Below, piece by piece: positions 26,130 through 54,867 of a stretch of DNA of 54,867 nucleotides. The stretch's first letter is position 1; every line of letters starts with the position of its first letter. The translations under genes were made by a program, and so were the position numbers. The notes beneath the pieces are model-generated. The model was given only the letters and a program-made list of their open reading frames with translations. It was not told the DNA's origin and searched no databases. The stretch is from Macrostomum lignano (lineage: Eukaryota): NCBI GenBank assembly GCA_002269645.1, contig NIVC01000410.1:1-54867 (forward strand), given 5' to 3'.

Positions 26130-26451
26130 GCAGTTGACAACAGCTGACTGACTGACTGACTGACTTTTTAGTTGTTAATTTTGATGCAGGCGTCGTGATT
26201 TTCTTAGAAACCACTTAATAACAAATGACTTGCAGCACTTGCGTAGTTTAAAAAATTAAAATTTTCTGACTGTTTGATGCTAGCAAAAATTGTGCCTTAT
26301 AGTTAGCCATTTGAAAGCGAATAAAGTCTAATTTGTTTTGAATTTTTATATACTCGTAATAAAATTAACACTATTAATAATATAATAAATAACTTAATTG
26401 AAATGAATCCTTTGACTTGAAGATTTGTTGTCATTCCTTAACAAATACAAA

Positions 26452-27640
26452 GTTGTGGCGCCTCCAATCTGTAAGTTGTGGCGCCTCCAATCTGTAAGTT
26501 GTGGCGCCTCCAATCTGTAAGTTGTGGTGCCTCCAATCTGTAAGTTGTGGCGCCTCCAATCTGTAAGTTGTGGTGCATCCAATCTGTAAGTTGTGGCGCC
26601 TCCAATCTGTAAGTTGTGGCGCCTCCAATCTGTAAGTTGTGGCGCCTCCAATCTGTAAGTTGTGGCGCCTCCAATCTGTAAGTTGTGGTGCATCCAATCT
26701 GTAAGTTGTGGTGCATCCAATCTGTAAGTTGTGGTGCATTCAACCTGTAAGTTGTGGCGCCTCCAATCTGTAAGTTGTGGTGCATCCAATCTGTAAGTTG
26801 TGGTGCATCCAATCTGTAAGTTGTGGTGCATTCAACCTGTAAGTTGTGGCGCCTCCAATCTGTAAGTTGTGGCGCCTCCAATCTGTAAGTTGTGGCGCCT
26901 CCAATCTGTAAGTTGTGGTGCATCCAATCTGTAAGTTGTGGTGCCTCCAATCTGTAAGTTGTGGCGCCTCCAATGTGTAAGTTGTGGCGCCCCTAATCTG
27001 TAAGTTGTGGCGCCTCCAATGTGTAAGTTGTGGCGCCCCCAATCTGTAAGTTGTGGTGCATCCAATGTGTAAGTTGTGGCGCCCCCAATCTGTAAGTCGT
27101 GTTGCATTCAACCTGTAAGTTGTGGCGCCTCCAATCTGTAAGTTGTGGTGCATCCAATCTGTAAGTTGTGGCGCCTCCAATGTGTAAGTTGTGGTGCCTC
27201 CAATCTGTAAGTTGTGGCGCCTCCAATCTGTAAGTTGTGGTGCATCCAATCTGTAAGTTGTGGCGCCTCCAATCTGTAAGTCGTGTTGCATTCAACCTGT
27301 AAGTTGTGGTGCATCCAATCTGTAAGTTGTGGCGCCTCCAATCTGTAAGTTATGGCGCCTTCAATCTGTAAGTTGTGGTGCATCCAATGTGTAAGTTGTG
27401 GTGCATCCAATCTGTAAGTCGTGTTGCATTCAACCTGTAAGTTGTGGTGCATCCAATCTGTAAGTTGTGGTGCCTCCAATGTGTAAGTTGTGGTGCCTCC
27501 AATCTGTAAGTTGTGGCGCCCCCAATCTGTAAGTTGTGGTGCATCCAATCTGTAAGTTGTGGTGCCTTCAACCTGTAAGTTGTGGCGCCCCCAATCTGGA
27601 AGTTGTGGCGCCCCCAATCTGGAAGTTGTGGCGCCTCTAA
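26452..27640. repeat. 23-bp minisatellite GTTGTGGCGCCTCCAATCTGTAA, ~52 copies
   Basis: Direct inspection. Confidence 0.98.
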
Positions 27641-27942
27641 TCCTGAAGTTGTGTTGATCTTCAATCGATTTCCGAGTGCCGATTGATCAATAACTATTAC
27701 TCCATCTAAATGTGCCTACTAATGAGTACCTAATCGAAGCATTTCCAGTACTTTACATTCCATATTTCTGCTCAATAGTATTCTCATAGAAAAAGTCAAA
27801 TCGTTGCCTCCAAAGTACATCATGCATTCAATTTAAATTATGTCATCAGAAACGCCTTAATAGTACAAACTTAAAAACGTAGAGTTTCTTTAATCAACAA
27901 TTTCTCAAGCTAGTAAAAACAAATTGGTTTAATTATCGAGAG

Positions 27943-32612: not shown

Positions 32613-32984
32613 TCTGAGTCTGGACAATGGCAGTCAGTTTTTGCGAACAGGGAAAACAAGATATGGTATTTGAAAGGCTTTACAGAGGATTTGGAGATGA
32701 TTTGGAAGATGGGATTCAAGTCATGGAATTTCAGCTGATGGATTTCAGGGAATGGAATTCCGGTGATGGGAGTTCTTCCCCTTTCTCCTCCAGAGGAGGA
32801 GTTGGCCTCGTTGAATTATATAAGTGGTACAACATCACTGATAATTTCGATGAGAGCTAGCCTAGAGCTGAACAGACCAGACTGCTAATGCAGCGACCTA
32901 GGTTCGAATCTAAGTAGTTTAAAAGTAGTAGTGTAAAATTTTTTATTAAAAGGTTTTATTAAAGGACTAAATAAAAACACTTAG

Positions 32985-35370
32985 ATTACTGCACTCGATA
33001 AGCCAAGGATTATTGCTATTAATAAACCAAGGATTACTGCACTTGGAAAACCAAGGATTACTGCACTCGATAAACCAAGGACTATTGCTCTTGGCAAACC
33101 AAGGATTACTGCACTCAGGAAGCCAAGGATTATTGCACTTGGAAAACCAAGGATTACTGCACTCGATAAACCAAGGACTATTGCTCTTGGCAAACCAAGG
33201 ATAACTGCACTCAAGAAGCCAAGGATTATTGCTATTAATAAACCAAGGATTATTGCACTTGGAAAACCAAGGATTACTGCACTCGATAAACCAAGGACTA
33301 TTGCTCTTGGCAAACCAAGGATTACTGCACTCAAGAAGCCAAGGATTATTGCACTTGGAAAACCAAGGATTACTGCACTCGATAAACCAAGGACTATTGC
33401 ACTTGATAAACCAAGGAATATTGCACTTGATAGGCCAAGGATTACAGCACTTGATAAACCAAGGATTATTGCACTTGATAGGCCAAAGATTACTGCGCTT
33501 GATAAACCAAGGATTATTGCACTTGATAAACCAAGGATTATTGCACTTGATAAGCCAAGGATTACTGCGCTTGATAAACCAAGGATTATTGCACTTGATA
33601 AACAAAGGATTATTGCACTTGATAAACAAAGGATTATTGCACTTGATAAACAAAGGATTATTGCACTTGATAAACCAAGGATTATTGCACTTGATAAGCC
33701 AAGGATTATTGCACTTGATAAGCCATGGATTATTGCACTTGATAGTAAAGAATGTTGCACTTGATAAGCCAAGGATTAATGCACTGGATTATTCAAGGAT
33801 TATTGTATTAATAAACCAAGGACTACTCCACTCGATAAACCAAGGAATATTGCTCTTAATAAACCAAGGATTACTGCACTTGGAAAACTAAGGATTACTG
33901 CACTCGATAAACCAAAGACTATTGCACTTGATAAACCAAGGATTATTGCACTTGATAGGCCAAGGATTACTGCACTTGATAAACCAAGGATTATTGCACT
34001 TGATAGGCCAAAAATTACTGCGCTTGATAAACCAAGGATTATTGCACTTGATAAACCAAGGATTATTGCACTTGATAAGCCAAGGATTATTGCACTTGAT
34101 AAACCAATGATTATTGCAGTTGATAAGCCAAGGATTATTGCATCTGATAAACCAAAGATTATTGCACTTGATAAACCAAGGATTATTGCACTTGATAAAC
34201 AAAGGATTATTGCACTTGATAGGCCAAAGATTACTGCGCTTGATAAACCAAGGATTATTGCACTTGATAAACCAAGGATTATTGCACTTGATAAGCCAAG
34301 GATTATTGCACTTGATAAACCAAGGATTATTGCAGTTGATAAGCCAAGGATTATTGCATCTGATAAACCAAGGATTATTGCACTTGATAAACCAAGGATT
34401 ATTGCACTTGATAAACCAAGGATTATTGCACTTGATAAACCAAGGATTATTGCTCTTGGCAAACCAAGGATTACTGCACTCGATAAGCCAAGGATTATTG
34501 CTCTTAATAAACCAAGGATTACTGCACTTGGAAAACTAAGGATTACTGCACTCGATAAACTAAGGATTATTGCTCTTGGCAAACCAAGGATTATTGCACT
34601 TGATAGGCCAAGGATTACTGCACTTGATAAACCAAGGATTATTGCACTTGATAAACCAAGGATTATTGCACTTGATAAGCCAAGGATTATTGCACTTGAT
34701 AGGCCAAGGATTACTGCGCTTGATAAACCAAGGATTATTGCACTTGATAAACCAAGGATTATTGCAGTTGATAAGCCAAGGATTATTGCACTTGATAAAC
34801 CAAGGATTATTACACTTGATAAACCAAGGATTATTGCACTTGATAAACCAAGGATTATTGCACTTGATAGGCCAAGGATTACTGCACTTGATAAACCAAG
34901 GATTATTGCACTTGATAGGCCAAAGATTACTGCGCTTGATAAACCAAGGATTATTGCAGTTGATAAGCCAAGGATTATTGCACTTGATAAACCAAGGATT
35001 ATTTCACTTGATAAACCAAGGATTATTGCACTTGATAAACAAATATTGCACTTGATAAACCAAGGATTATTGCACCTGATAAGCCAAGGATTACTGCGCT
35101 AGATAAACCAAGGATTATTGCACTTAATAAACCAAGGATTATTGCACTTAATAAACCAAGGATTATTGCACTTGATAAACCAAGGATTATTGCACTTGAT
35201 AAACAAAGGATTATTGCACTTGATAAACCAAGGATTATTGCACTTTATAAGCCAAAGATTACTGCACTTGATAAACCAAGGATTATTGCACTTGATAAAC
35301 CAAGGATTATTGCACTTGATTAATCAAGGATTATTGGTATTAATAAACCAAGGATTATTGCACTAGCTGA
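32985..35370. repeat. 24-bp minisatellite TTGCACTTGATAAACCAAGGATTA, ~100 copies
   Basis: Direct inspection; 8-residue periodicity in the ORF track. Confidence 0.98.
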
Positions 35371-36164: not shown

Positions 36165-37322
36165 AAGGAGAAGGCAGAAGAGAGAGAATTTAAGACAGCA
36201 TAGTAATGGAGAGAAGAGAGGAAATGAGAGAAGCGAAGAGAGAGATGAGAAAAATGGGAAGAGGAGAGGAGAGGAGAGGAGAGACAGGAAAGGGGAGAGA
36301 GGGGAGGAGAGAAAAGAGGAGAGAGAATGGGGAGAGGAGAGGAGAGAGAATGGGGAGAAAAGAGGAGAGAGAATGGGGAGAGGAGAGGAGAGAGAATGGG
36401 GAGAGGAGAGGAGAGAGAATGGGGAGAAAAGAGGAGAGAGAATGGGGAGAGAAGAGGAGAGAGAATGGGGAGAGAAGAGGAGAGAGAATGGGGAGAAAAG
36501 AGGAGAGAGAATGGGGAGAAAAGAGGAGAGAGAATGGGGAGAGGAGAGGAGAGAGAATGGGGAGAGGAGAGGAGAGAGAATGGGGAGAAAAGAGGAGAGA
36601 GAATGGGGAGAGGAGAGGAGAGAGAATGGGGAGAGTAGAGGAGAGAGAATGGGGAGAGGAGAGGAGAGAGAATGGGGAGAGTAGAGGAGAGAGAATGGGG
36701 AGAGTAGAGGAGAGAGAATGGGGAGAGGAGAGGAGAGAGAATGGGGAGAGTAGAGGAGAGAGAATGGGGAGAGGAGAGGAGAGAGAATGGGGAGAGGAGA
36801 GGAGAGAGAATGGGGAGAGGAGAGGAGAGAGAATGGGGAGAGGAGAGGAGAGAGAATGGGGAGAAAAGAGGAGAGAGAATGGGGAGAAAAGAGGAGAGAG
36901 AATGGGGAGAAAAGAGGAGAGAGAATGGGGAGAGGAGAGGAGAGAGAATGGGGAGAGGAGAGGAGAGAGAATGGGGAGAGGAGAGGAGAGAGAATGGGGA
37001 GAGGAGAGGAGAGAGAATGGGGAGAAAAGAGGAGAGAGAATGGGGAGAAAAGAGGAGAGAGAATGGGGAGAAAAGAGGAGAGAGAATGGGGAGAAAAGAG
37101 GAGAGAGAATGGGGAGAGGAGAGGAGAGAGAATGGGGAGAAAAGAGGAGAGAGAATGGGGAGAGGAGAGGAGAGAGAATGGGGAGAGGAGAGGAGAGAGA
37201 ATGGGGAGAAAAGAGGAGAGAGAATGGGGAGAAAAGAGGAGAGAGAATGGGGAGAAAAGAGGAGAGAGAATGGGGAGAAAAGAGGAGAGAGAATGGGGAG
37301 AGGAGAGGAGAGAGAGAAGAGA
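36165..37322. repeat. 23-bp purine minisatellite GGAGAGAGAATGGGGAGAGGAGA, ~43 copies
   Basis: Direct inspection. Confidence 0.97.
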
Positions 37323-37789
37323 AGAAAGATCCATTTTGAACAGACGTGGTAAAATCTACGTGTACTTTAAATATTGAAAAAAAGTTATACTCGTACTTCA
37401 GTGATTAAGCGTTAAAAAGTCTCCCATTTAAAAGAATTTAAAAGTCACCCAGACATTCTACAAAACACAAGCTGCAGATAACAGAAAGCAGAAAAAAAAT
37501 TCTGGATTCAATTCGCTTCATTTAAATTGCGCCGCAAAGAGTGGCGCTTTTCCAGTTGGCATTAAATTATTAAAATCGACAAGATCGTGCTTAGAATTAA
37601 AATATCTTCTCTCACAAAAATGGCTTAGACGTGATAAAAAGACTGATGTTTTTGTCAAGAAACAAATCTCAAGGGAATCTGCGATTGAGTCCAATTTCTT
37701 CGTCTGCTAACATGGAAAACTTAGTACTTTCGGCGCTACTTTGAGTACAAGCGGGCGCTATTTTTCTTACTAAAGGTACCACTTTCGAG

Positions 37790-40700
37790 TTACGAGAGGT
37801 GCCAATTTGAGGTTACTAGAAGCGCCACTTTAAGGTTACTAGAAGCGCCAGTTTGAGGTTACTAGAAGCGCCAGTTTGAGGTTACTAGAAGCGCCAGTTT
37901 GAGGTTACTAGAAGCGCCACTTTAAGTTTACTAGAAGCGCCAATTTGAGGTTACTAGAAGCGCCAGTTTGAGGTTACTAGAAGCGCCAGTTTGAGGTTAC
38001 TAGAAGCGCCACTTTGAGGTTACTAGAAGCGCCACTTTGAGGTTACTAGAAGCGCCACTTTGAGGTTACTAGAAGCGCCACTTTGAGGTTACTAGAAGCG
38101 CCACTTTGAGGTTACTAGAAGCGCCACTTTAAGGTTACTGGAAGCGCCACTTTGAGATTACTAGAAGCGCCAGTTTGAGGTTACTAGAAGCGCCAGTTTG
38201 AGGTTACTAGAAGCGCCACTTTAAGTTTACTAAAAGCGCCAATTTGAGGTTACTAGAAGCGCCACTTTAAGGTTACTAGAAGCGCCAGTTTAAGTTTACT
38301 AGAAGCGCCACTTTGAGGTTACTAGAAGCGCCAATTTGAGGTTACTAGAAGCGCCACTTTGAGGTTACTAGAAGCGCCAGTTTGAGGTTACTAGAAGCGC
38401 CACTTTGAGATTACTAGAAGCGCCACTTTAAGTTTACTAGAAGCGCCAGTTTGAGGTTACTGGAAGCGCCACTTTAAGGTTACTAGAAGCGCCACTTTAA
38501 GGTTACTAGAAGCGCCACTTTATGGTTACTAGAAGCGCCACTTTGAGGTTACTAGAAGCGCCAGTTTGAGGTTACTAGAAACGCCACTTTGAGGTTACTA
38601 GAAGCGCCACTTTGAGGTTACTAGAAGCGCCAGTTTGAGGTTACTAGAAGCGCCACTTTGAGGTTACTGGAAGCGCCACTTTGAGGTTACTAGAAGCACC
38701 ACTTTGAGGTTACTAGAAGCGCCACTTTGAGGTTACTAGAAGCACCACTTTGAGATTACTAGAAGCGCCACTTTGACGTTACTGGAAGCGCCACTTTGAG
38801 GTTACTAGAAGCACCACTTTGAGGTTACTAGAAGCGCCACTTTAAGTTTACTAGAAGCGCCACTTTGAGGTTACTAGAAGCACCACTTTGAGGTTACTGG
38901 AAGCGCCACTTTGAGGTTACTAGAAGCGCCACTTTGAGGTTACTAGAAGCGCCACTTTAAGTTTACTAAAAGCGCCACTTTGAGGTTACTAGAAGCGCCA
39001 GTTTGAGGTTATTGGAAGCGCCACTTTAAGGTTACTAGAAGCGCCACTTTAAGGTTACTAGAAGCGCCACTTTATGGTTACTAGAAGCGCCAGTTTGAGG
39101 TTACTAGAAGCGCCAGTTTAAGGTTACTAGAAGCGCCATTTTAAGGTTACTAGAAGCGCCACTTTGAGGTTACTAGAAGCGCCACTTTGAGGTTACTAGA
39201 AGCGCCAGTTTGAGGTTACTAGAAGCGCCACTTTGAGGTTACTAGAAGCGCCAGTTTGAGGTTACTAGAAGCGCCAGTTTGAGGTTACTAGAAGCGCCAG
39301 TTTGAGGTTACTAGAAGCGCCAATTTGAGGTTACTAGAAGCGCCAGTTTGAGGTTAATAGAAGCGCCAGTTTGAGGTTACTAGAAGCACCACTTTGAGGT
39401 TACTAGAAGCACCACTTTGAGGTTACTAGAAGCGCCACTTTAAAGTTACTGGAAGCGCCACTTTAAGTTTACTAGAAGCGCCACTTTAAGTTTACTAGAA
39501 GCGCCAGTTTGAGGTTACTAGAAGCGCCACTTTAAGTTTACTAGAAGCGCCAGTTTGAGGTTACTAGAAGCGCCACTTTAAGTTTACTAGAAGCGCCAGT
39601 TTGAGGTTACTAGAAGCGCCACTTTAAGTTTACTAGAAGCGCCAGTTTGAGGTTACTAGAAGCGCCACTTTAAGTTTACTAGAAGCGCCAGTTTGAGGTT
39701 ACTAGAAGCGCCAGTTTGAGGTTACTAGAAGCACCACTTTGAGGTTACTAGAAGCGCCACTTTGAGGTTACTAGAAGCTCCACTTTAAGGTTACTAGAAG
39801 CGCCAGTTTGAGGTTACTAGAAGCGCCAGTTTAAGGTTACTAGAAGCGCCACTTTAAGGTTACTAGAAGCGCCACTTTATGGTTACTAGAAGCGCCACTT
39901 TGAGGTTACTAGAAGCGCCAGTTTGAGGTTACTAGAAGCGCCAGTTTAAGGTTACTAGAAGCGCCATTTTAAGGTTACTAGAAGCGCCACTTTGAGGTTA
40001 CTAGAAGCGCCACTTTAAGGTTACTGGAAGCGCCACTTTAAGTTTACTAGAAGCGCCACTTTAAGTTTACTAGAAGCGCCAGTTTGAGGTTACTAGAAGC
40101 GCCACTTTAAGTTTACTAGAAGCGCCAGTTTGAGGTTACTAGAAGCGCCACTTTAAGTTTACTAGAAGCGCCACTTTGAGGTTACTAGAAGCGCCACTTT
40201 AAGGTTACTGGAAGCGCCACTTTAAGTTTACTAGAAGCGCCACTTTAAGTTTACTAGAAGCGCCAGTTTGAGGTTACTAGAAGCGCCACTTTAAGTTTAC
40301 TAGAAGCGCCAGTTTGAGGTTACTAGAAGCGCCACTTTAAGTTTACTAGAAGCGCCAGTTTGAGGTTACTAGAAGCGCCACTTTAAGTTTACTAGAAGCG
40401 CCAGTTTGAGGTTACTAGAAGCGCCACTTTAAGTTTACTAGAAGCGCCAGTTTGAGGTTACTAGAAGCGCCAGTTTGAGGTTACTAGAAGCGCCACTTTG
40501 AGGTTACTAGAAGCGCCACTTTGAGGTTACTAGAAGCTCCACTTTAAGGTTACTAGAAGCGCCAGTTTGAGGTTACTAGAAGCGCCAGTTTAAGGTTACT
40601 AGAAGCGCCACTTTAAGGTTACTAGAAGCGCCACTTTATGGTTACTAGAAGCGCCACTTTGAGGTTACTAGAAGCGCCAGTTTGAGGTTACTAGAAGCGC

Positions 40701-41525
40701 CAGTTTAAGGTTACTAGAAGCGCCATTTTAAGGTTACTAGAAGCGCCACTTTGAGGTTACTAGAAGCGCCACTTTGAGGTTACTAGAAGCGCCAGTTTGA
40801 GGTTACTAGAAGCGCCAGTTTGAGGTTACTAGAAGCGCCAGTTTGAGGTTACTAGAAGCGCCAGTTTGAGGTTACTAGAAGCGCCAGTTTGAGGTTACTA
40901 GAAGCGCCACTTTGAGGTTACTAGAAGCGCCAGTTTGAGGTTACTAGAAGCGCCAGTTTGAGGTTACTAGAAGCGCCAGTTTGAGGTTACTAGAAGCGCC
41001 AGTTTGAGGTTACTAGAAGCGCCAGTTTGAGTTTACTAGAAGCGCCACTTTGAGGTTACTAGAAGCGCCACTTTGAGGTTACTAGAAGCGCCATTTTAAG
41101 GTTACTAGAAGCGCCACTTTGAGGTTACTAGAAGCGCCACTTTGAGATTACTAGAAGCGCCACTTTAAGTTTACTAGAAGCGCCAGTTTGAAGTTACTAG
41201 AAGAGCCACTTTAAGGTTACTAGAAGCGCCACTTTAAGGTTACTAGAAGCGCCACTTTAAGGTTACTAGAAGCGCCACTTTGAGGTTACTAGAAGCGCCA
41301 CTTTAAGTTTACTAGAAGCGCCAGTTTGAAGTTACTAGAAGCGCCACTTTAAGGTTACTAGAAGCGCCACTTTGAGGTTACTAGAAGCGCCACTTTGAGG
41401 TTACTAGAAGCGCCACTTTGAGGTTACTAGAAGCGCCACTTTAAGTTTACTAGAAGCGCCAGTTTGAGGTTACTGGAAGCGCCAGTTTAAGGTTACTAGA
41501 AGCGCCAGTTTGAGGTTACTAGAAT
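37790..41525. repeat. 23-bp satellite ACTAGAAGCGCCACTTTGAGGTT, ~160 copies
   Basis: Direct inspection. Confidence 0.99.
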
Positions 41526-44902: not shown

Positions 44903-45924
44903 GGAATGGATTGCTAATCTAGCCAATCACAGATCAATTGGAATAGAATGGATTGCTAATCTAGCCAATCACAGATCAATTGGAATAGAATGGATTGCTA
45001 ATCTAGCCAATCACAGATCAATTGGAATAGAATGGATTGCTAATCTAGCCAATCACAAATCAATTGGAATAGAATGGATTGCTAATCTAGCCAATCACAA
45101 ATCAATTGGAATAGAATGGATTGCTAATCTAGCCAATCACAAATCAATTGGAATAGAATGGATTGCTAATCTAGCCAATCACAAATCAATTGGAATAGAA
45201 TGGATTGCTAATCTAGCCAATCACAAATCAATTGGAATAGAATGGATTGCTAATCTAGCCAATCACAAATCAATTGGAATAGAATGGATTGCTAATCTAG
45301 CCAATCACAGATCAATTGGAATAAAATGGATTGCTAATCTAGCCAATCACAAATCAATTGGAACAGAATGGATTGCTAATCTAGCCAATCACAGATCAAT
45401 TGGAATAGAATGGATTGCTAATCTAGCCAATCACAAATCAATTGGAATAGAATGGATTGCTAATCTAGCCAATCACAGATCAATTGGAATAGAATGGATT
45501 GCTAATCTAGCCAATCACAAATCAATTGGAATAGAATGGATTGCTAATCTAGCCAATCACAAATCAATTGGAATAGAATGGATTGCTAATCTAGCCAATC
45601 ACAAATCAATTGGAATAGAATGGATTGCTAATCTAGCCAATCACAGATCAATTGGAATAGAATGGATTGCTAATCTAGCCAATCACAGATCAATTGGAAT
45701 AGAATGGATTGCTAATCTAGCCAATCACAAATCAATTGGAATAGAATGGATTGCTAATCTAGCCAATCACAGATCAATTGGAATAGAATGGATTGCTAAT
45801 CTAGCGAATCACAGATCAATTGGAATAGAATGGATTGCTAATCTAGCCAATCACAAATCAATTGGAATAGAATGGATTGCTAATCTAGCCAATCACAAAT
45901 CAATTGGAATAGAATGGATTGCTA
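44903..45924. repeat. 42-bp repeat GAATGGATTGCTAATCTAGCCAATCACA(A/G)ATCAATTGGAATA, ~24 copies
   Basis: Direct inspection; nearly invariant units. Confidence 0.98.
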
Positions 45925-46379
45925 CTCCAGCATATTGAATAAAAATGGAAATCTTTATCGTTCATTCATCGCATCGTAAATTTTTCAATAAGTGCATCAA
46001 ATTTGTGTGCCTTTTTTGTGCAGCGCATGATTGGCAGGCCGTCAGGATCTCCGTTCTCCAATAGAAAGTAAAAAGTGATTTCTAGAAAGCAACGCAAAGA
46101 TGGATGCAGAGAAGGAAGCGAAGGAAAGCGAAGGAAAGTAACGAGTATAGCAGAGGAAACTGCAGCTTGAGGTCACCGGGATGTGAAAAGGCTGGTAACA
46201 GCATTGCTAACTATATGAGTGCAAATGGGGGCGTGACCGAGGGGAAGTGCTGGAGACGGTGGCTCTCAACTTTCCTTAGATACATTGCTGGGTTCTAAAG
46301 AATATTATAGTATTTTATTTATGGAGAATTTATATCTTAAAATTGAGCTGGCTGGCTGAATTACCTTGCCTTGAAAGAC

Positions 46380-47720
46380 GCTTTAGCACCAGGGGCTTTA
46401 GCACCAGGGGCTTTAGCACCAGGGGCTTTAGCACCAGGGGCTTTAGCACCAGGGGCTTTAGCACCAGGGGCTTTAGCACCAGGGGCTTTAGCACCAGGGC
46501 TTTAGCACCAGGGGCTTTAGCACCAGGGGCTTTAGCACCAGGGGCTTTAGCACCAGGGGCTTTAGCACCAGGGCTTTAGCACCAGGGGCTTTAGCACCAG
46601 GGGCTTTAGCACCAGGGGCTTTAGCACCAGGGGCTTTAGCACCAGGGCTTTAGCACCAGGGGCGCCAGCACCAGGGTCGCCAGCACCAGGGGCGCCAGCA
46701 CCAGGGGCGCCAGCACCAGGGGCGCCAGCACCAGGGGCGCCAGCACCAGGGGCGCCAGCACCAGGGGCGCCAGCACCAGGGGCGCCAGCACCAGGGGCGC
46801 CAGCACCAGGGGCGCCAGCACCAGGGGCGCCAGCACCAGGGGCGCCAGCACCAGGGGCGCCAGCACCAGGGGCGCCAGCACCAGGGGCGCCAGCACCAGG
46901 GGCGCCAGCACCAGGGGCGCCAGCACCAGGGGCGCCAGCACCAGGGGCGCCAGCACCAGGGGCGCCAGCACCAGGGGCGCCAGCACCAGGGGCGCCAGCA
47001 CCAGGGGCGCCAGCACCAGGGGCGCCAGCACCAGGGGCGCCAGCACCAGGGTCGCCAGCACCAGGGGCGCCAGCACCAGGGGCGCCAGCACCAGGGGCGC
47101 CAGCACCAGGGGCGCCAGCACCAGGGGCGCCAGCACCAGGGGCGCCAGCACCAGGGGCGCCAGCACCAGGGGCGCCAGCACCAGGGGCGCCAGCACCAGG
47201 GGCGCCAGCACCAGGGGCGCCAGCACCAGGGGCGCCAGCACCAGGGGCGCCAGCACCAGGGGCGCCAGCACCAGGGGCGCCAGCACCAGGGGCGCCAGCA
47301 CCAGGGGCGCCAGCACCAGGGGCGCCAGCACCAGGGGCGCCAGCACCAGGGGCGCCAGCACCAGGGGCGCCAGCACCAGGGGCGCCAGCACCAGGGGCGC
47401 CAGCACCAGGGGCGCCAGCACCAGGGGCGCCAGCACCAGGGGCGCCAGCACCAGGGGCGCCAGCACCAGGGGCGCCAGCACCAGGGGCGCCAGCACCAGG
47501 GGCGCCAGCACCAGGGGCGCCAGCACCAGGGGCGCCAGCACCAGGGGCGCCAGCACCAGGGGCGCCAGCACCAGGGGCGCCAGCACCAGGGGCGCCAGCA
47601 CCAGGGGCGCCAGCACCAGGGGCGCCAGCACCAGGGGCGCCAGCACCAGGGGCGCCAGCACCAGGGGCGCCAGCACCAGGGGCGCCAGCACCAGGGGAAC
47701 CAGCACCAGGGGCGCCAGCA
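46380..47720. repeat. 15-bp GC-rich satellite with two domains (GCACCAGGGGCTTTA, then GCACCAGGGGCGCCA), ~90 copies
   Basis: Direct inspection; the unit type switches at ~46655. Confidence 0.99.
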
Positions 47721-49484: not shown

Positions 49485-51905
49485 TCACTCCCCGTGCAGC
49501 CTACTGCCAGTAGGACTAGTTGAATACGACCGCCTCTTGCCGAAGCGTAGAATGCGCGAATAGGTGAACGAGCCGAGCAGAGCGTAGAAAGCCAGCGCGG
49601 CAACCCACAGGGGCCGGTTGCGATGGGCCCGGCCGCACACCACGTACCAGTCGCTATAGTCTGCGGGCAGCTCGCCTTTGGCGGCCGGACAGGAGAAATC
49701 CCAGTCTTCGTCCATGTCCCTCTCGCAGACGTAGCGGTGCCGAACCTACGGTAAGGCCATCGAAAAATACAATTACTTGAAAGCAAGTTCAATTCCAGCA
49801 AGCTCAAATGATACAAAGATGACGTATAATGTGTTACCTACCTGTAATTATCAGTAATTTAATTGATAATTTATAATATGCCTTTTACTCTACGATCAAG
49901 GATGTACACCCTTGGAGTTTTCGTCCGGAATTTTAAGCTTATTTCGATAGGCGACCTACCCACTGCTTCGCACAACCGATTCGTCTAATACTCGTGTCTC
50001 TGCTACCTACACGACTGCTTCTTATGACCTGTCCGTGACTGATACTCCATGAATTGTCATCCGCTATCTATAAACACTGTTGAACTCACCTGTCCAGAGA
50101 AGTCCTTTTGCTCAACTCTGCACGGCCCGTAGGTCTGGTGGATGCCGTCGCTCACGTGATCCTCCGGCCGGCCAAAGAACATGATGCAAAACAGAGCGGC
50201 ATAGTAACAGCAGAGAGCCAGGTTGATAGAGAAATCTGGAGCAGCACGAATGAATGGACCGCACGGATGCTTCAACAGCGAGCGTCTTGGCGACTGTCGA
50301 GCAATGGCTACCAGGTAGAGACCCACACCGACCATCAGGCTGGACAGTGTCGGCACACCTTGGCGATCCCAACTGATCAGCTGTAGCAGCGCCATTTGCA
50401 CCATCATTAGCGGCGTCGACAAGAGACAAACAGCAACCATGGCAACGGCTTCAGATCGACGCCAGTTCAAATAGACCGTTCTAATCAGGAAGCTGAAGGT
50501 CCCGGTGAAGGTGATCACCCATAGGGTGCTGCCTACCGGAACGCGAGCATTCGATAGCTGATTGGCGGGTCCGTGTCATGCCAGGTCCACCTGATGAATC
50601 AGTTGGTGAATTTCGCGTGTTGCTGACTATGTCTGCTATCAGATGCTTTCGGAATAGTAGAAAGATTGATTGACCGATCACTCAACAGGTTCAATACATT
50701 CTCACTGGTGAAGCACGTTTTAAGCAAATACTTATCAATGCATCGTTACTGGATCTAATCATTTAACATTTAGTTTTGAGTACTGAATACTGAATAAACG
50801 GCTGATTTATTGGGATTGCATCCAATGATATTATCATGCTTGATAGTATGAATGGTTAATTTTTATCATGTTCATTGGTGTTCGTCGTTATTTCCCGTAA
50901 TATTTCCTGTACGGGAGCAGCAGTTTTGGGTTAGGGGTCGTGAGTCGTGTATCAAGGGGCCCATAATCATAAATTGTTGTGTAATAACAATAGGGGTTAT
51001 AGCCCAGAGGTTAGAGTGTCAGATTCATGACTTGAAGGTCCGTGGTTCGACTCCCGATCCCACTGGAACAATTTGTGTCCTTCAGCAAGTCACTTAACTC
51101 TGCATTGCTTCGGTTCACCCAGCTGTAAAATGGAGTGCCAGCATTAGCTGGGGTAATTGAGAGTGTGTGGCGACCCCCCAGTCCTTGGACTGAACAGCCG
51201 TACGCAGCCTTCAGATACGCCGCGCAATAGCTGCGGCTGAGCTGTCGGTTGCACATCTGGCCCAATTGAGCGCAGGTGTAATCAGTTATGATGTAAATGT
51301 AATTAGGCTTAAAAAGTCCCTGCACCCAGATGGGGGGTCACTGTTTCATTAGTCAAACACAAACTCACCAAAGAAACTTGATACCGATGATGTCGTACGG
51401 CATGTAGATCATGATGCCCATGAGACCGCTGAGACAAGCTTCCGCCAGAGTCGGTAGGCCCAGTCGCCAAGCGCTTACCGTAGCAAAGTACATGAACGTG
51501 CAATAAACGCAACAGATGTACAGCGGCAGCCTAGGCGTGAGCATTATTGTTGCTTGAGCCTGCCAGAAGTTGTCAACCAGAGGCAGGTACATAAAAAATA
51601 TGTCGTTTGATGAGCCGGCAAGAAAGCTGGCGAACCAGACGAAGACGTGCCGACGGTCTTGTCGAATAGCGTGGATTAGCGCTAAAGCGGCAAGGAAGAT
51701 AAACAGATACTCGCCGATCAGAAACGTTGGCAGAACCTGAAAAAAGATTTGTTTAAATCTCGGATCTGTGCACAATACGAGCTAAAACTAACAAATAAAA
51801 CGAATTAAAGTTTGTTAAAATTACCTGCCACTGTTCTTTCGGCGACGAAATGTGCTTCCAAGGGATATGATCCCATTTCGAGTACCAAGTTTTTATTAAA
51901 TCCAT
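49485..51905 (-). CDS. Uncharacterised multi-pass membrane protein, DUF7802/PTHR35982-like, copy A (~403 aa; 1-bp deletion at ~50544)
   Basis: Exons 51905-51825, 51736-51369, 50590-50090 and 49745-49485. Motifs DNFWQAQ, RLPLY, PYDIIGIKFLWWTWHDTDP, GPC and WYVVCG are present. The family name is recalled from memory and needs HMM confirmation. Confidence 0.8.
50993..51290 (+). mobile_element. tRNA-derived CORE-SINE (family B) in intron 2 of DUF7802 copy A
   Basis: A-box TAGCCCAGAGG (51000) and B-box GGTTCGACTCC (51044). These are followed by TGTGTCCTTCAGCAAGTCACTTAACTCT...CAGCTGTAAAATGG (51074-51133), which resembles the MIR CORE. Confidence 0.8.
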
Positions 51906-52653
51906 AGTTTCGTTGAGTCTTGGTGGACCTATAACAGATTTCTATAGATCGGTAGTCTGAATATTAACCAAGTGTAGCTGGAAGCTTACTTTAAGAGATC
52001 CAAAATATAATATTTATCGACTCTCTACGTGTAAATTTGTTAGTGTGCTGATTTTTTAAAAAAAATGTGGCGCGAGAGCGATAGCACTAGTACAGCTGAG
52101 CTCTGCTCAAATGCGAGAAGAGAGAAAGAGAGAGAGAAGAAAATCTGGCGCAGTCTTGCACGGACTGTCACTGTATAGCGACCCTCACTGAGTGTCTGTA
52201 GCTTACTAGCTAGCTCCACTATGCTCACACACAACCTTTAACCTTGCTCTATCACTCAATTGTTCCGCTGTGTGGCCTGGGCAGCTCCAAGATAAGCGGG
52301 TAGCAGCAATTCAGGCTCCAGTTGGCAGTCAAGTCAAGGTCACGTACGACAGATACTTGAAATTCGCCTTTCTAGCGAGTAAATTCCGTCTGAGTCCCTG
52401 TCGAATAAATTCCATTTGCCCACTTGTCGAGTAAATTCCATCTGGCTGCATAGTGGAAGAAGCTTACCTGACTTACATGCATACTTAAACAAAAAATCTG
52501 TGCTTTTATTTGCTCAGGTTTTTTGTTCCTACTCAGTCATTCCGGTCGCTTAATTTTCATAGCCTTCTGAAAGTCTGGAAACAAGGTTTTGTTCAAGATA
52601 GTTCAAAACTACTGGTGCACTCGATCGTAATCACAAATGCTAAAATAACAGCA

Positions 52654-53931
52654 ATGGCAAAGTCCAGCATCAACATCGCCCCCGATTACAATCAGTATCC
52701 ATGGCGACACGTCAACAGCATCCACCAGGTTTTTCACGTAGGTTCTATTCTTATTAAAGTACAATAGAATTAAAATTTTACCAATTGAAATGCATGTTTT
52801 TTATCTATAACTTCTTTCAAGGACTCTCCAGTGCTACTAAGCCTCGAGCTGACCACTCTCAGTCTCTACTCGTTGCTAATCCTACACGCCATTCGGCGAC
52901 GCAAACTATCGGTCCTACTTGCTGCCACCATCTCTGGCGCTGTCAACGAAGTTGTATTCACCAGCCTGCGATTGTGAATAACTTCTGGCACGCCCAGGCA
53001 TGGCTGATGCTCGGTCCTCGCTTGCCAGCCTGGCAGCCAGCTCTGTACGGCCTATTCATCTACGTAGCCTGTCAGTCCGCCGACATTTTACACAGTTTTG
53101 GCTGGAACAGCCGCATCGGTCGTGCGGCTGTCGCAGGCATTTTAGCCTTCCTGCTCCTATTCCCCATGGACGCCGTCTGCGTCCGTTTGTGGCTTACACC
53201 TGGCACGACTCCGATCCGCTGCTGGCAGACCGAGTCATGGGCGTGGCAGCCGGTAATGGCATGTTTGCTGTAGCTTTTTCCTTTCTGCTTTGCCGCGCTG
53301 ACTGCTTCTAGTAGACGTTTTGGTCCAGCTTATCGCCTGCTTGCTGGAGCACTCCGAGTATGGTGCTGCTCACCCTGCCGCTGGATCAGTTCGTAGGCGA
53401 CGGTGTACCTACGCAAACCAGCCTGATCGCCCTGTTAGTCGGCATGACGTCAATTGTTGTTGTAGCAGCATCTTCACGTCCGGCTCGCCAGAAAGTTCAA
53501 AGACGACTGCAGACTTGACTATACCGCTGGTGGGGTTCATCTATTATTTAGTGCTGCTTTCAGTTTCAATTCTGGCTGATCCAGGCCAGAAAAGCGTCGG
53601 ATTTCATCAGCCTCTTTCGCCGATCGGCCCGTGCCTGGCGACATTACCGACCTGTCTGCAAGCGGTCGTCAGCGTCAAATATACCTTTGTCCAAACGAAT
53701 TATCAGCAGCCACAAGGGATGTCCTGGATCCGACTGCGACCCGACGAGAAGCATCGATCAGCACTGGTACGTTGTGTGCGGACGGCCATTCGACTCTGCA
53801 GGCAACAGTGGTGGCAGCAGGCGAACATTCGTTATCAGCTGGCTTGCATTGCAGCACTTGGGATGCTGGGCTTGACAGCTGTCAGCGGGGCTTGTCGTGA
53901 CATTCTACGTTACACGCTGCATCTATGGTAA
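52654..53931 (+). pseudogene. Paralogous DUF7802-like copy B, about 7 or more frame disruptions
   Basis: Exon 52654-52728 (..YPWRHV..) is followed by 52822-53931. Colinear blocks LHAIRR, NNFWHAQ, PRLP, YTWHDSDP, STP..GVPT, GFHQ..GPC and HWYVVCGR switch between all three frames. Could be a pseudogene or consensus error. Confidence 0.75.
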
Positions 53932-54867
53932 AAATATCGGCAGAGCAACCTTTCGTCAATGATCGAATTCACGAAGAAATAGCTTGATGATACAAGCAAC
54001 AAATGCTGGTTGGACGAAACAAAAGTCAATGCTAGTCCAGTTTATTGTGTCACTATTACACAGTAAAACGCAGTTTTTCGTGCTTTAAAGTAAAATATTT
54101 TAGTTGACTGCGAAGATTAGGCTGTCATTTTTTCTATCCTATGATTTTAGGCACAAAACTAAAAGCTTTGCAAGTAAGCGTGCAGTACATATTATTAATT
54201 TAAATGATTCGTGAGCAAAGAAAGGCGTGATTGCTTTCAAACAATTAATAAACTGAAAAAAAAGTTGACTAAAGAAATTTTATTTGATTCGATAAGACTT
54301 TAGAATAAGCAAGTTTATACTTTATTAATCTTATCTCAGCTTCTCTCATTTTTAGTGCTGGAAAATAAAATGTTGTTGTGAACTATAATTTGCTTTAGCC
54401 TCTGTGCCATTCCAGAAGGGTGCAGAGTGCTAGTAAAAAACTGTTTATGACTCAGATCCTCGGTAGATAAATGTTGGTTGTTGATGGCGAAATAGATATT
54501 CATACACGATGCGAAAAGCGTCTCTAAAAATGCGAGTTCGCAAACGTTCCTTATTTAACGCCACTTTCTGTGCTATACTAACCCCCTAAAGATGCAAGCT
54601 CGTCTCAATGAGTGAGACCAATCTGGGTTGCAGAGCCTCCATTCTTTCTTCATTTTCTCTATTTGATTGCCGTACTGAACTTAATGGGTACAGCAGTGCT
54701 CCGTCTTTAATGCAAGTTCACGCGCTGTAATTTTCATATATATTTTTACTCTTTCTCAAGGACAGGGCTGCTTGTCTGAACGTCATAACCGAATTTATAT
54801 TTTTGCTGGAATTGTCTCTACTAGGTAGTACCTGATACTTCAAATGACTATAAGTATGGTAAACTCA

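Follow-up and report, generated by a model that had tools for sequence, protein, structure and literature searches.

What are the two genes that stand head-to-head near one end of contig NIVC01000410.1 of the flatworm Macrostomum lignano, are they intact, and what might the protein family to which they belong do? The window analysed here is the whole 54,867-bp contig of the M. lignano assembly GCA_002269645.1 (Mlig_3_7), and GT-AG introns and numerous tandem repeats mark its sequence as eukaryotic. Both genes belong to the Pfam family DUF7802 (PF25085), and their start codons are separated by a spacer of 748 bp (51906–52653). The gene pair and the paralogy of its members are almost certainly genuine, and a local inverted duplication gave rise to the divergent pair. 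Taken as a whole, we lean towards an explanation in which a real gene pair carries artefactual frame breaks in this contig and represents a family with a link to sterols.

Gene A (Mlig023060, this contig's copy being annotated as g4) occupies 49485–51905 on the minus strand. Our exon model has four exons (51905–51825, 51736–51369, 50590–50090, and 49745–49485, stop codon included) that encode 403 residues and are separated by three GT-AG introns, of which intron 2 (50591–51368) is 778 nt long. Gene B (Mlig016769) lies on the plus strand, starts at 52654, and ends with a TGA at 53898–53900; its two exons encode 389 residues. Exon 1 (52654–52737) comprises 28 codons (MAKSS...HQVFH) and is followed by a GTAGGT donor at 52738, the sole intron (52738–52821) is a GT-AG intron of 84 nt in phase 0, and exon 2 extends over 52822–53900. 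These start codons, at 51905 on the minus and 52654 on the plus strand, are the ones proposed in an earlier, sequence-only reading of the window. That reading placed the end of the pair at 53931, which is the end of an out-of-frame open reading frame (ORF), as gene B already stops at 53900. It was correct in recognizing the genes as a pair but not in taking them as intact ORFs, since neither gene reads through in the window and the breaks had been missed.

Both gene models agree with existing annotation. A protein search with gene A found BOX15_Mlig023060g1 (403 residues, 99% identical); gene A is also 99–100% identical to PAA69834.1 and PAA57444.1, and its model equals the 403-residue BOX15_Mlig023060g3 save for a frameshift. 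The only GenBank product of gene A on this contig, BOX15_Mlig023060g4 (PAA83710.1), is a 203-residue fragment. The gene B model yields the 422- and 425-residue products annotated on two other contigs as BOX15_Mlig016769g1 and g2 (PAA69835.1 and PAA57443.1), each of which is labelled ‘partial’; these annotated 5′-partial ORFs start about 100 nt upstream of the gene B ATG. The pair is found on three contigs (the window, NIVC01001285.1, and NIVC01002488.1), and the assembly contains three or more copies of the locus, with approximately 97–98% identity. The pair is thus already annotated as hypothetical proteins, and its head-to-head layout is unremarkable.

Membership of both genes in DUF7802 was confirmed by comparison with the hidden Markov model of the family, a check suggested in the sequence-only reading. 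Against a gathering score of 27.4 bits, gene A scores 198.7 bits (E = 2e-58, model positions 44–417 of 425) and the conceptual protein of gene B scores 75.9 bits (E = 3.8e-21, model positions 43–401). Gene A and intact gene B align colinearly over their full length with 31% identity (BLASTP E = 5e-46), which is far more than chance would give, and all six motifs listed earlier for the proposed divergent paralogues (PW(K/R)H, NFW(Q/H)AQ, RLP, TWHD(T/S)DP, GPC, and WYVVCG) are present in both genes. Intron 1 is in phase 0 in both genes and occupies corresponding alignment positions (it follows EQWQ in gene A and QVFH in gene B), while introns 2 and 3 of gene A have no counterpart in gene B. At the DNA level, mirror-ordered similarity is left at three motifs (inverted repeats I1–I3). 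Colinearity in opposite orientation together with the common intron position supports an inverted duplication, and the duplication appears old and deeply diverged, as had been claimed, with gene B showing 31% identity to gene A and 28–32% to every other member tested. The possibility that gene B is a processed (retro-copied) pseudogene was rejected because gene B keeps the 84-nt intron at the position of gene A intron 1.

The two genes differ in how closely they follow the rest of the family, which is characterized by the motifs ND, VDNFWQAQ, RxPLY, YDxxGxKFxWWTWHDxD, HQxxGxC, and WYxxCG and by four cysteines. Gene A, the conserved family member, is 44–54% identical to copepod and bacterial homologues and retains 71 of 71 family-invariant positions in a 16-member alignment that included gene A itself. 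Gene B is unusually divergent compared with other DUF7802 members and retains 49 of 71 positions that are invariant in 16 other members; the 22 changed positions include D72E, Q86H, Y100W, Y141M, K147R, W150A, H295Q, and D331V. A search of a 5.8-billion-protein index with intact gene B from NIVC01001285.1 returned no match and is silent on gene B orthologues. In our view, the word prefilter is to blame for this null result, since gene B matches family members in BLASTP with E values between 1e-35 and 1e-47. A 71-residue fragment of gene B encoded by the window gave weak family matches of ≤48% identity, except that 21 of its residues matched a 99-residue fragment at 95%; these results are uninformative on gene B orthologues. 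The statement that the family has no known function holds as well: it corresponds to Pfam DUF7802, NCBIfam contains no model for it, and no mention of DUF7802, PF25085, PTHR35982, Mlig023060, or Mlig016769 was found in the literature and supplements searched.

The annotated GenBank proteins listed above are products of the same genes, from which the copies on this contig differ by their frame breaks. Gene A contains a 1-nt deletion in exon 3 (50540–50546, approximately at 50543, minus strand; GGC GTT to GCGTT) that is unique to the window, breaks the MLGVPVG stretch, and accounts for the truncation of the GenBank product to 203 residues. Exon 2 of gene B contains ten frameshifting 1-nt indels in the window (at 52968, 53184, 53275, 53330, 53346, 53471, 53636, 53733, 53836, and 53875) and a 3-nt deletion at 53583. 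On NIVC01001285.1 and NIVC01002488.1, gene A (403 residues) and gene B (389 residues from the ATG) are both intact. These two contigs and the window were compared in a three-way alignment of assembled sequences. The terminal zone of the window (52968–54730) has about 18 window-unique indel events (about 20–21 alignment columns) and no window-unique substitution, and over the whole stretch between ~51900 and the end of the contig, window-unique substitutions number 0–1. When the window is compared with one other contig, the last ~1.9 kb differs by short-homopolymer indels only, without any substitution, and at all substituted sites in gene B the window is identical to NIVC01002488.1. The window-unique indels carry on through the non-coding ~1 kb past gene B, and each inspected indel in the coding region alters a run of 1–5 identical bases. 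The 3.8 kb preceding the terminal zone presents the reverse proportion, with only 3 unique indel events versus 17 unique substitutions.

Because this divergence is indel-only and confined to the contig terminus, the frame breaks are very probably assembly errors, as judged from the sequence comparison, and would have entered the consensus of a redundant PacBio contig whose final ~2 kb was poorly polished. Mlig_3_7 is a Canu assembly of PacBio data to which Pilon polishing was applied, and blocks duplicated at ≥95% identity make up 180 Mb of it (PMC5730564). Short-read polishing is weak in those duplicated blocks. It is very unlikely that gene B of the window, and perhaps gene A, is instead a real pseudogene, that is, a decaying redundant homeologue in a recently polyploid genome, although ten frameshifts in 1.08 kb of gene B and one in gene A would fit decay, redundant genome copies could be lost without cost (PMC5730564), and a truncated gene A is all that GenBank annotates on this contig. 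Natural decay yields substitutions far in excess of indels, whereas gene B has no window-unique substitution and all of its indels are window-unique; moreover, the same indel-only pattern persists in the ~1 kb of non-coding sequence between gene B and the contig end, and the inspected coding-region indels all lie in short homopolymer runs. Real disruptions combined with neutral substitution, as expected of a pseudogene, were not seen in the window's gene B, in what is an indirect comparison. Two points weigh against reading all of the breaks as assembly errors. The gene A deletion is not part of the error-rich zone, being 4.3 kb away from the contig end, and its status as an artefact is less certain than that of the gene B breaks. 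In addition, the error reading derives from a comparison of contigs, under which very recent indel-only decay is formally possible. Users of the assembly should in any case treat the truncated gene models of this contig with caution. As a separate observation, the window is nearer to NIVC01001285.1 over gene A and nearer to NIVC01002488.1 over gene B, a mixed resemblance that suggests either a recombinant haplotype or a chimeric consensus.

The intact copies allow gene B to be assessed independently of its state in the window. The gene B copies of NIVC01001285.1 and NIVC01002488.1 are separated by 13 synonymous and 3 non-synonymous changes, with one more H/Y change in the three exon-1 codons gained by the corrected donor site, and the gene A proteins of the same contigs are 1 residue apart. 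This ratio indicates strong purifying selection on gene B, which is therefore taken to be functional. The Mlig_3_7 gene set was built from RNA-seq-guided transcript assembly (PMC5730564), and the annotation of gene B therefore implies its transcription. The sequence-only reading had named an untranscribed copy B, absent elsewhere, as fatal to its proposal; gene B is instead intact and annotated on two contigs, with the signature of purifying selection. Gene B is accordingly a fast-diverged paralogue, probably with an altered or accessory role.

The proposal that the two genes share regulation is more doubtful. The spacer, for which a promoter role is putative, contains three copies of the 17-nt motif CGAGTAAATTCCGTCTG, 26 nt apart, at 52376–52444, and a short hairpin at 52488–52527. 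The arrangement resembles the bidirectional gene pairs of animals, which are likewise head-to-head with coding starts less than 1 kb apart; unlike in those pairs, the partners here are paralogues, and the sharing of a promoter is putative. We regard it as rather unlikely that one bidirectional promoter in the spacer serves gene A and gene B as a co-regulated or heteromeric pair. The short distance between the two ATGs (<1 kb) in head-to-head orientation and the retention of this layout on all three contigs are consistent with a shared promoter, and gene B, which has the fold-defining motifs but 22 of 71 invariant residues changed, would fit an accessory subunit. On the other hand, the spacer diverges between the copies by ~2%, about as fast as the introns. 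Since trans-splicing acts on approximately 39% of the genes of M. lignano (PMC5730564), the 5′ end of a mature transcript does not necessarily coincide with a promoter. The bacterial loci described below argue against an obligatory heteromer, as each of the 80 holds one DUF7802 gene and a paralogous partner is therefore not a family requirement. Neither Mlig023060 nor Mlig016769 is mentioned in the expression tables searched.

The main addition of this analysis is the recurrent linkage, in bacteria, of DUF7802 to sterol-type oxygenase genes, which provides a testable lead to the function of the family. In the species genomes of GTDB, a scan identified 80 DUF7802 loci, mostly from Nannocystaceae and Polyangia (Myxococcota) and also from sponge-associated Acidimicrobiia (‘Ca. 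Poriferisodalis’), Binatia, and others; the neighbouring ORFs were clustered, and the cluster representatives were then annotated. FA_hydroxylase (PF04116) is encoded immediately upstream on the same strand in 45 of the 80 loci, with gaps of −49 to +89 bp (42 of 74 among loci with sufficient upstream flank). The combination of Rieske, KshA_C, and SCP2 sterol-carrier is found in 20 loci, in 16 of these upstream on the same strand and mostly beyond FA_hydroxylase. A sterol methyltransferase (Sterol_MT_C) occurs in nine of the 80 loci, mostly downstream on the opposite strand, and a short-chain dehydrogenase (SDR) in 12, at variable positions. No conserved gene was found downstream of the bacterial DUF7802 genes. 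In one annotated locus, the genes for TetR, Rieske/KshA_C/SCP2, FA_hydroxylase, and DUF7802 follow one another with gaps of a few bases. On the microbial contig Ga0206882_1007 of JGI metagenome 3300020640, DUF7802 lies among four P450 and two FAD_binding_4 genes, together with genes for an FA_hydroxylase-FAD_binding_4 fusion (797 residues), Rieske/KshA_C, and methionine synthase, a gene content that makes it look like a putative steroid-tailoring cluster.

The cultured carriers of DUF7802 in the match list include Nannocystis species, Enhygromyxa salina, and Paraliomyxa miuraensis. Of these, Nannocystis is a producer of lathosterol and of related demethylated (C27) sterols, and E. salina one of cholesterol (PMC4919349, PMC10202945). 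The family is thus associated in the genome with sterol-pathway genes in organisms that produce sterols. In the ‘Ca. Poriferisodalis’ sponge symbionts, DUF7802 adjoins a sterol C-24 methyltransferase-like gene in four loci, an arrangement of possible relevance to the discussion of bacteria as a source of sterol biomarkers methylated in the side chain.

A structural model of the gene A protein offers a second view of the family. The AlphaFold2 model (predicted local distance difference test, pLDDT, 79.6; predicted template modelling score, pTM, 0.84) combines nine long helices with a beta domain (residues 296–355) that holds the four conserved cysteines, from which DUF7802 is predicted to be a polytopic membrane protein with nine transmembrane helices. 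A sequence search of the PDB found no relative, and a Foldseek comparison of the model with the PDB found nothing similar (best E value 0.26, template modelling score 0.18). Based on the helix order in the model and the positive-inside rule, the most conserved pair of loops (VDNFWQAQ and WWTWHDxD) and the cysteine domain would face the luminal or extracytoplasmic side. EBP/EXPERA, the ERG4/ERG24 reductases, SRD5A, and FA_hydroxylase are also polytopic membrane proteins, and the sterol link of DUF7802 comes from genomic context. DUF7802 has no similarity in sequence or fold to solved structures, and its likeness to these membrane sterol enzymes is a functional conjecture.

From these neighbourhoods, we tentatively suggest, at somewhat below an even chance, that DUF7802 has a role in late sterol modification together with a di-iron membrane oxygenase. 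The family would act on sterols or a similar membrane lipid and would work with an oxygenase of the fatty-acid-hydroxylase type. Several considerations weigh against this suggestion and keep it tentative. The functional argument is drawn from gene neighbourhood, and the topology from the helices of the model and the positive-inside rule. An FA_hydroxylase gene next to DUF7802 is lacking in about 40% of the bacterial loci, among them all three from E. salina. In NCBIfam, the FA_hydroxylase neighbour matches only OlsE, an ornithine-lipid hydroxylase, and does so weakly; the FA_hydroxylase superfamily also acts on non-sterol lipids, with many substrates. Finally, a tblastn search of the flatworm window found no homologue of FA_hydroxylase, Rieske, SDR, or sterol methyltransferase (SMT) proteins. 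It is the loci lacking this neighbour, the non-sterol substrates, and the lack of a flatworm neighbour that hold our confidence to this level. A literature search on sterol dealkylation enzymes returned nothing relevant.

The same observations can be read differently. The substrate of DUF7802 proteins might be a lipid other than a sterol (ether lipids, ornithine lipids or sphingolipids, or carotenoids), or the proteins might be transporters or receptors and not enzymes; we consider this possible but unlikely. The many non-sterol substrates of the FA_hydroxylase superfamily and the weak OlsE match would fit such a role, as would the ~40% of loci without a sterol-type neighbour and a conserved protein face that, in the model, appears extracytoplasmic. 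It is more difficult to reconcile with the recurrence of three sterol-type neighbours (Rieske/KshA_C with SCP2, Sterol_MT_C, and a DHCR24-like FAD_binding_4 with P450s) and with the known sterol producers among the named cultured carriers. A more ambitious form of the sterol hypothesis would make DUF7802 an unrecognised class of sterol-processing membrane enzyme or an obligatory partner of sterol oxygenases of the FA-hydroxylase type, with a fold that has no solved relative, common to sterol-producing bacteria and some invertebrates, and represented in the flatworm by a catalytic gene A and a diverged accessory or neofunctionalised gene B, both expressed from the common spacer. We judge this extended version improbable.

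The bacterial homologues also raise the question of where the flatworm genes came from. The DUF7802 proteins of Nannocystaceae, Polyangia, and Acidimicrobiia have the same length, motifs, and four cysteines as gene A, which is 44–52% identical to the bacterial proteins and 46–52% identical to the myxobacterial ones. The genes differ in their surroundings: those of bacteria are single-copy and usually downstream of FA_hydroxylase in an operon-like arrangement, whereas those of the flatworm have introns, form a head-to-head duplicate, and have no FA_hydroxylase neighbour. Horizontal acquisition of the flatworm genes from Myxococcota appears very improbable. It might be suggested by the identity of gene A to myxobacterial proteins, which is as high as that to copepods, and by the small number of named animal matches (two copepods and M. 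lignano). However, spliceosomal introns interrupt the flatworm genes, their genomic surroundings are those of a flatworm, and in a rough neighbour-joining tree gene A is placed with the copepods in an animal group beside the clade that contains all named bacterial sequences. Gene B sits on a long branch in the same tree, and its position is not fixed. Bacterial contamination of the assembly was rejected given the introns, the surrounding flatworm repeats, and the presence of the pair on three contigs.

Viewed by itself, the gene pair is ordinary: it is a tandem-inverted duplication within a Pfam DUF family, already annotated, and its damage is most likely artefactual. The wider value lies in the family, which is strongly conserved, retains 44–54% identity between animals and bacteria and has no solved structural relative. 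Should the sterol link prove true, DUF7802 might account for a step that is not yet assigned, either in sterol modification by bacteria or in the way invertebrates handle sterols. M. lignano is amenable to RNA interference and transgenesis, and is a tractable animal in which to test the function of the family.

Some minor features of the locus may be useful for its annotation. On NIVC01002488.1 (1–6297), in sequence past the point where the window stops, a large ankyrin-repeat/protein-kinase gene (2109 residues) lies ~1.7 kb downstream of gene B on the same strand. Two older UniProt models, A0A1I8H716 and A0A1I8JJ02, share a 90% cluster with gene B, which suggests that they fuse gene B to the ankyrin/kinase gene; the fused models could be due to read-through or polycistronic transcription, or to a prediction artefact. 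Other older UniProt models join gene A to a low-complexity tail that resembles a translated tandem repeat. Within intron 2 of gene A, a dispersed repeat of ~119 bp (approximately 51165–51283) recurs at 2847–2964 of the window with 90% identity. It is not recognisable as tRNA-derived, since a scan of the window with ARAGORN called no tRNA. The window also contains very large tandem-repeat arrays, at 26450–27653 (23-nt unit, 52 copies), 32984–35364 (24-nt unit, 99 copies), and 37779–41524 (23-nt unit, 163 copies), and further arrays at 36226–37315 (23-nt unit, 47 copies), 44904–45931 (42-nt unit, 24 copies), and 46385–47720 (GC-rich 15-nt unit, 89 copies).

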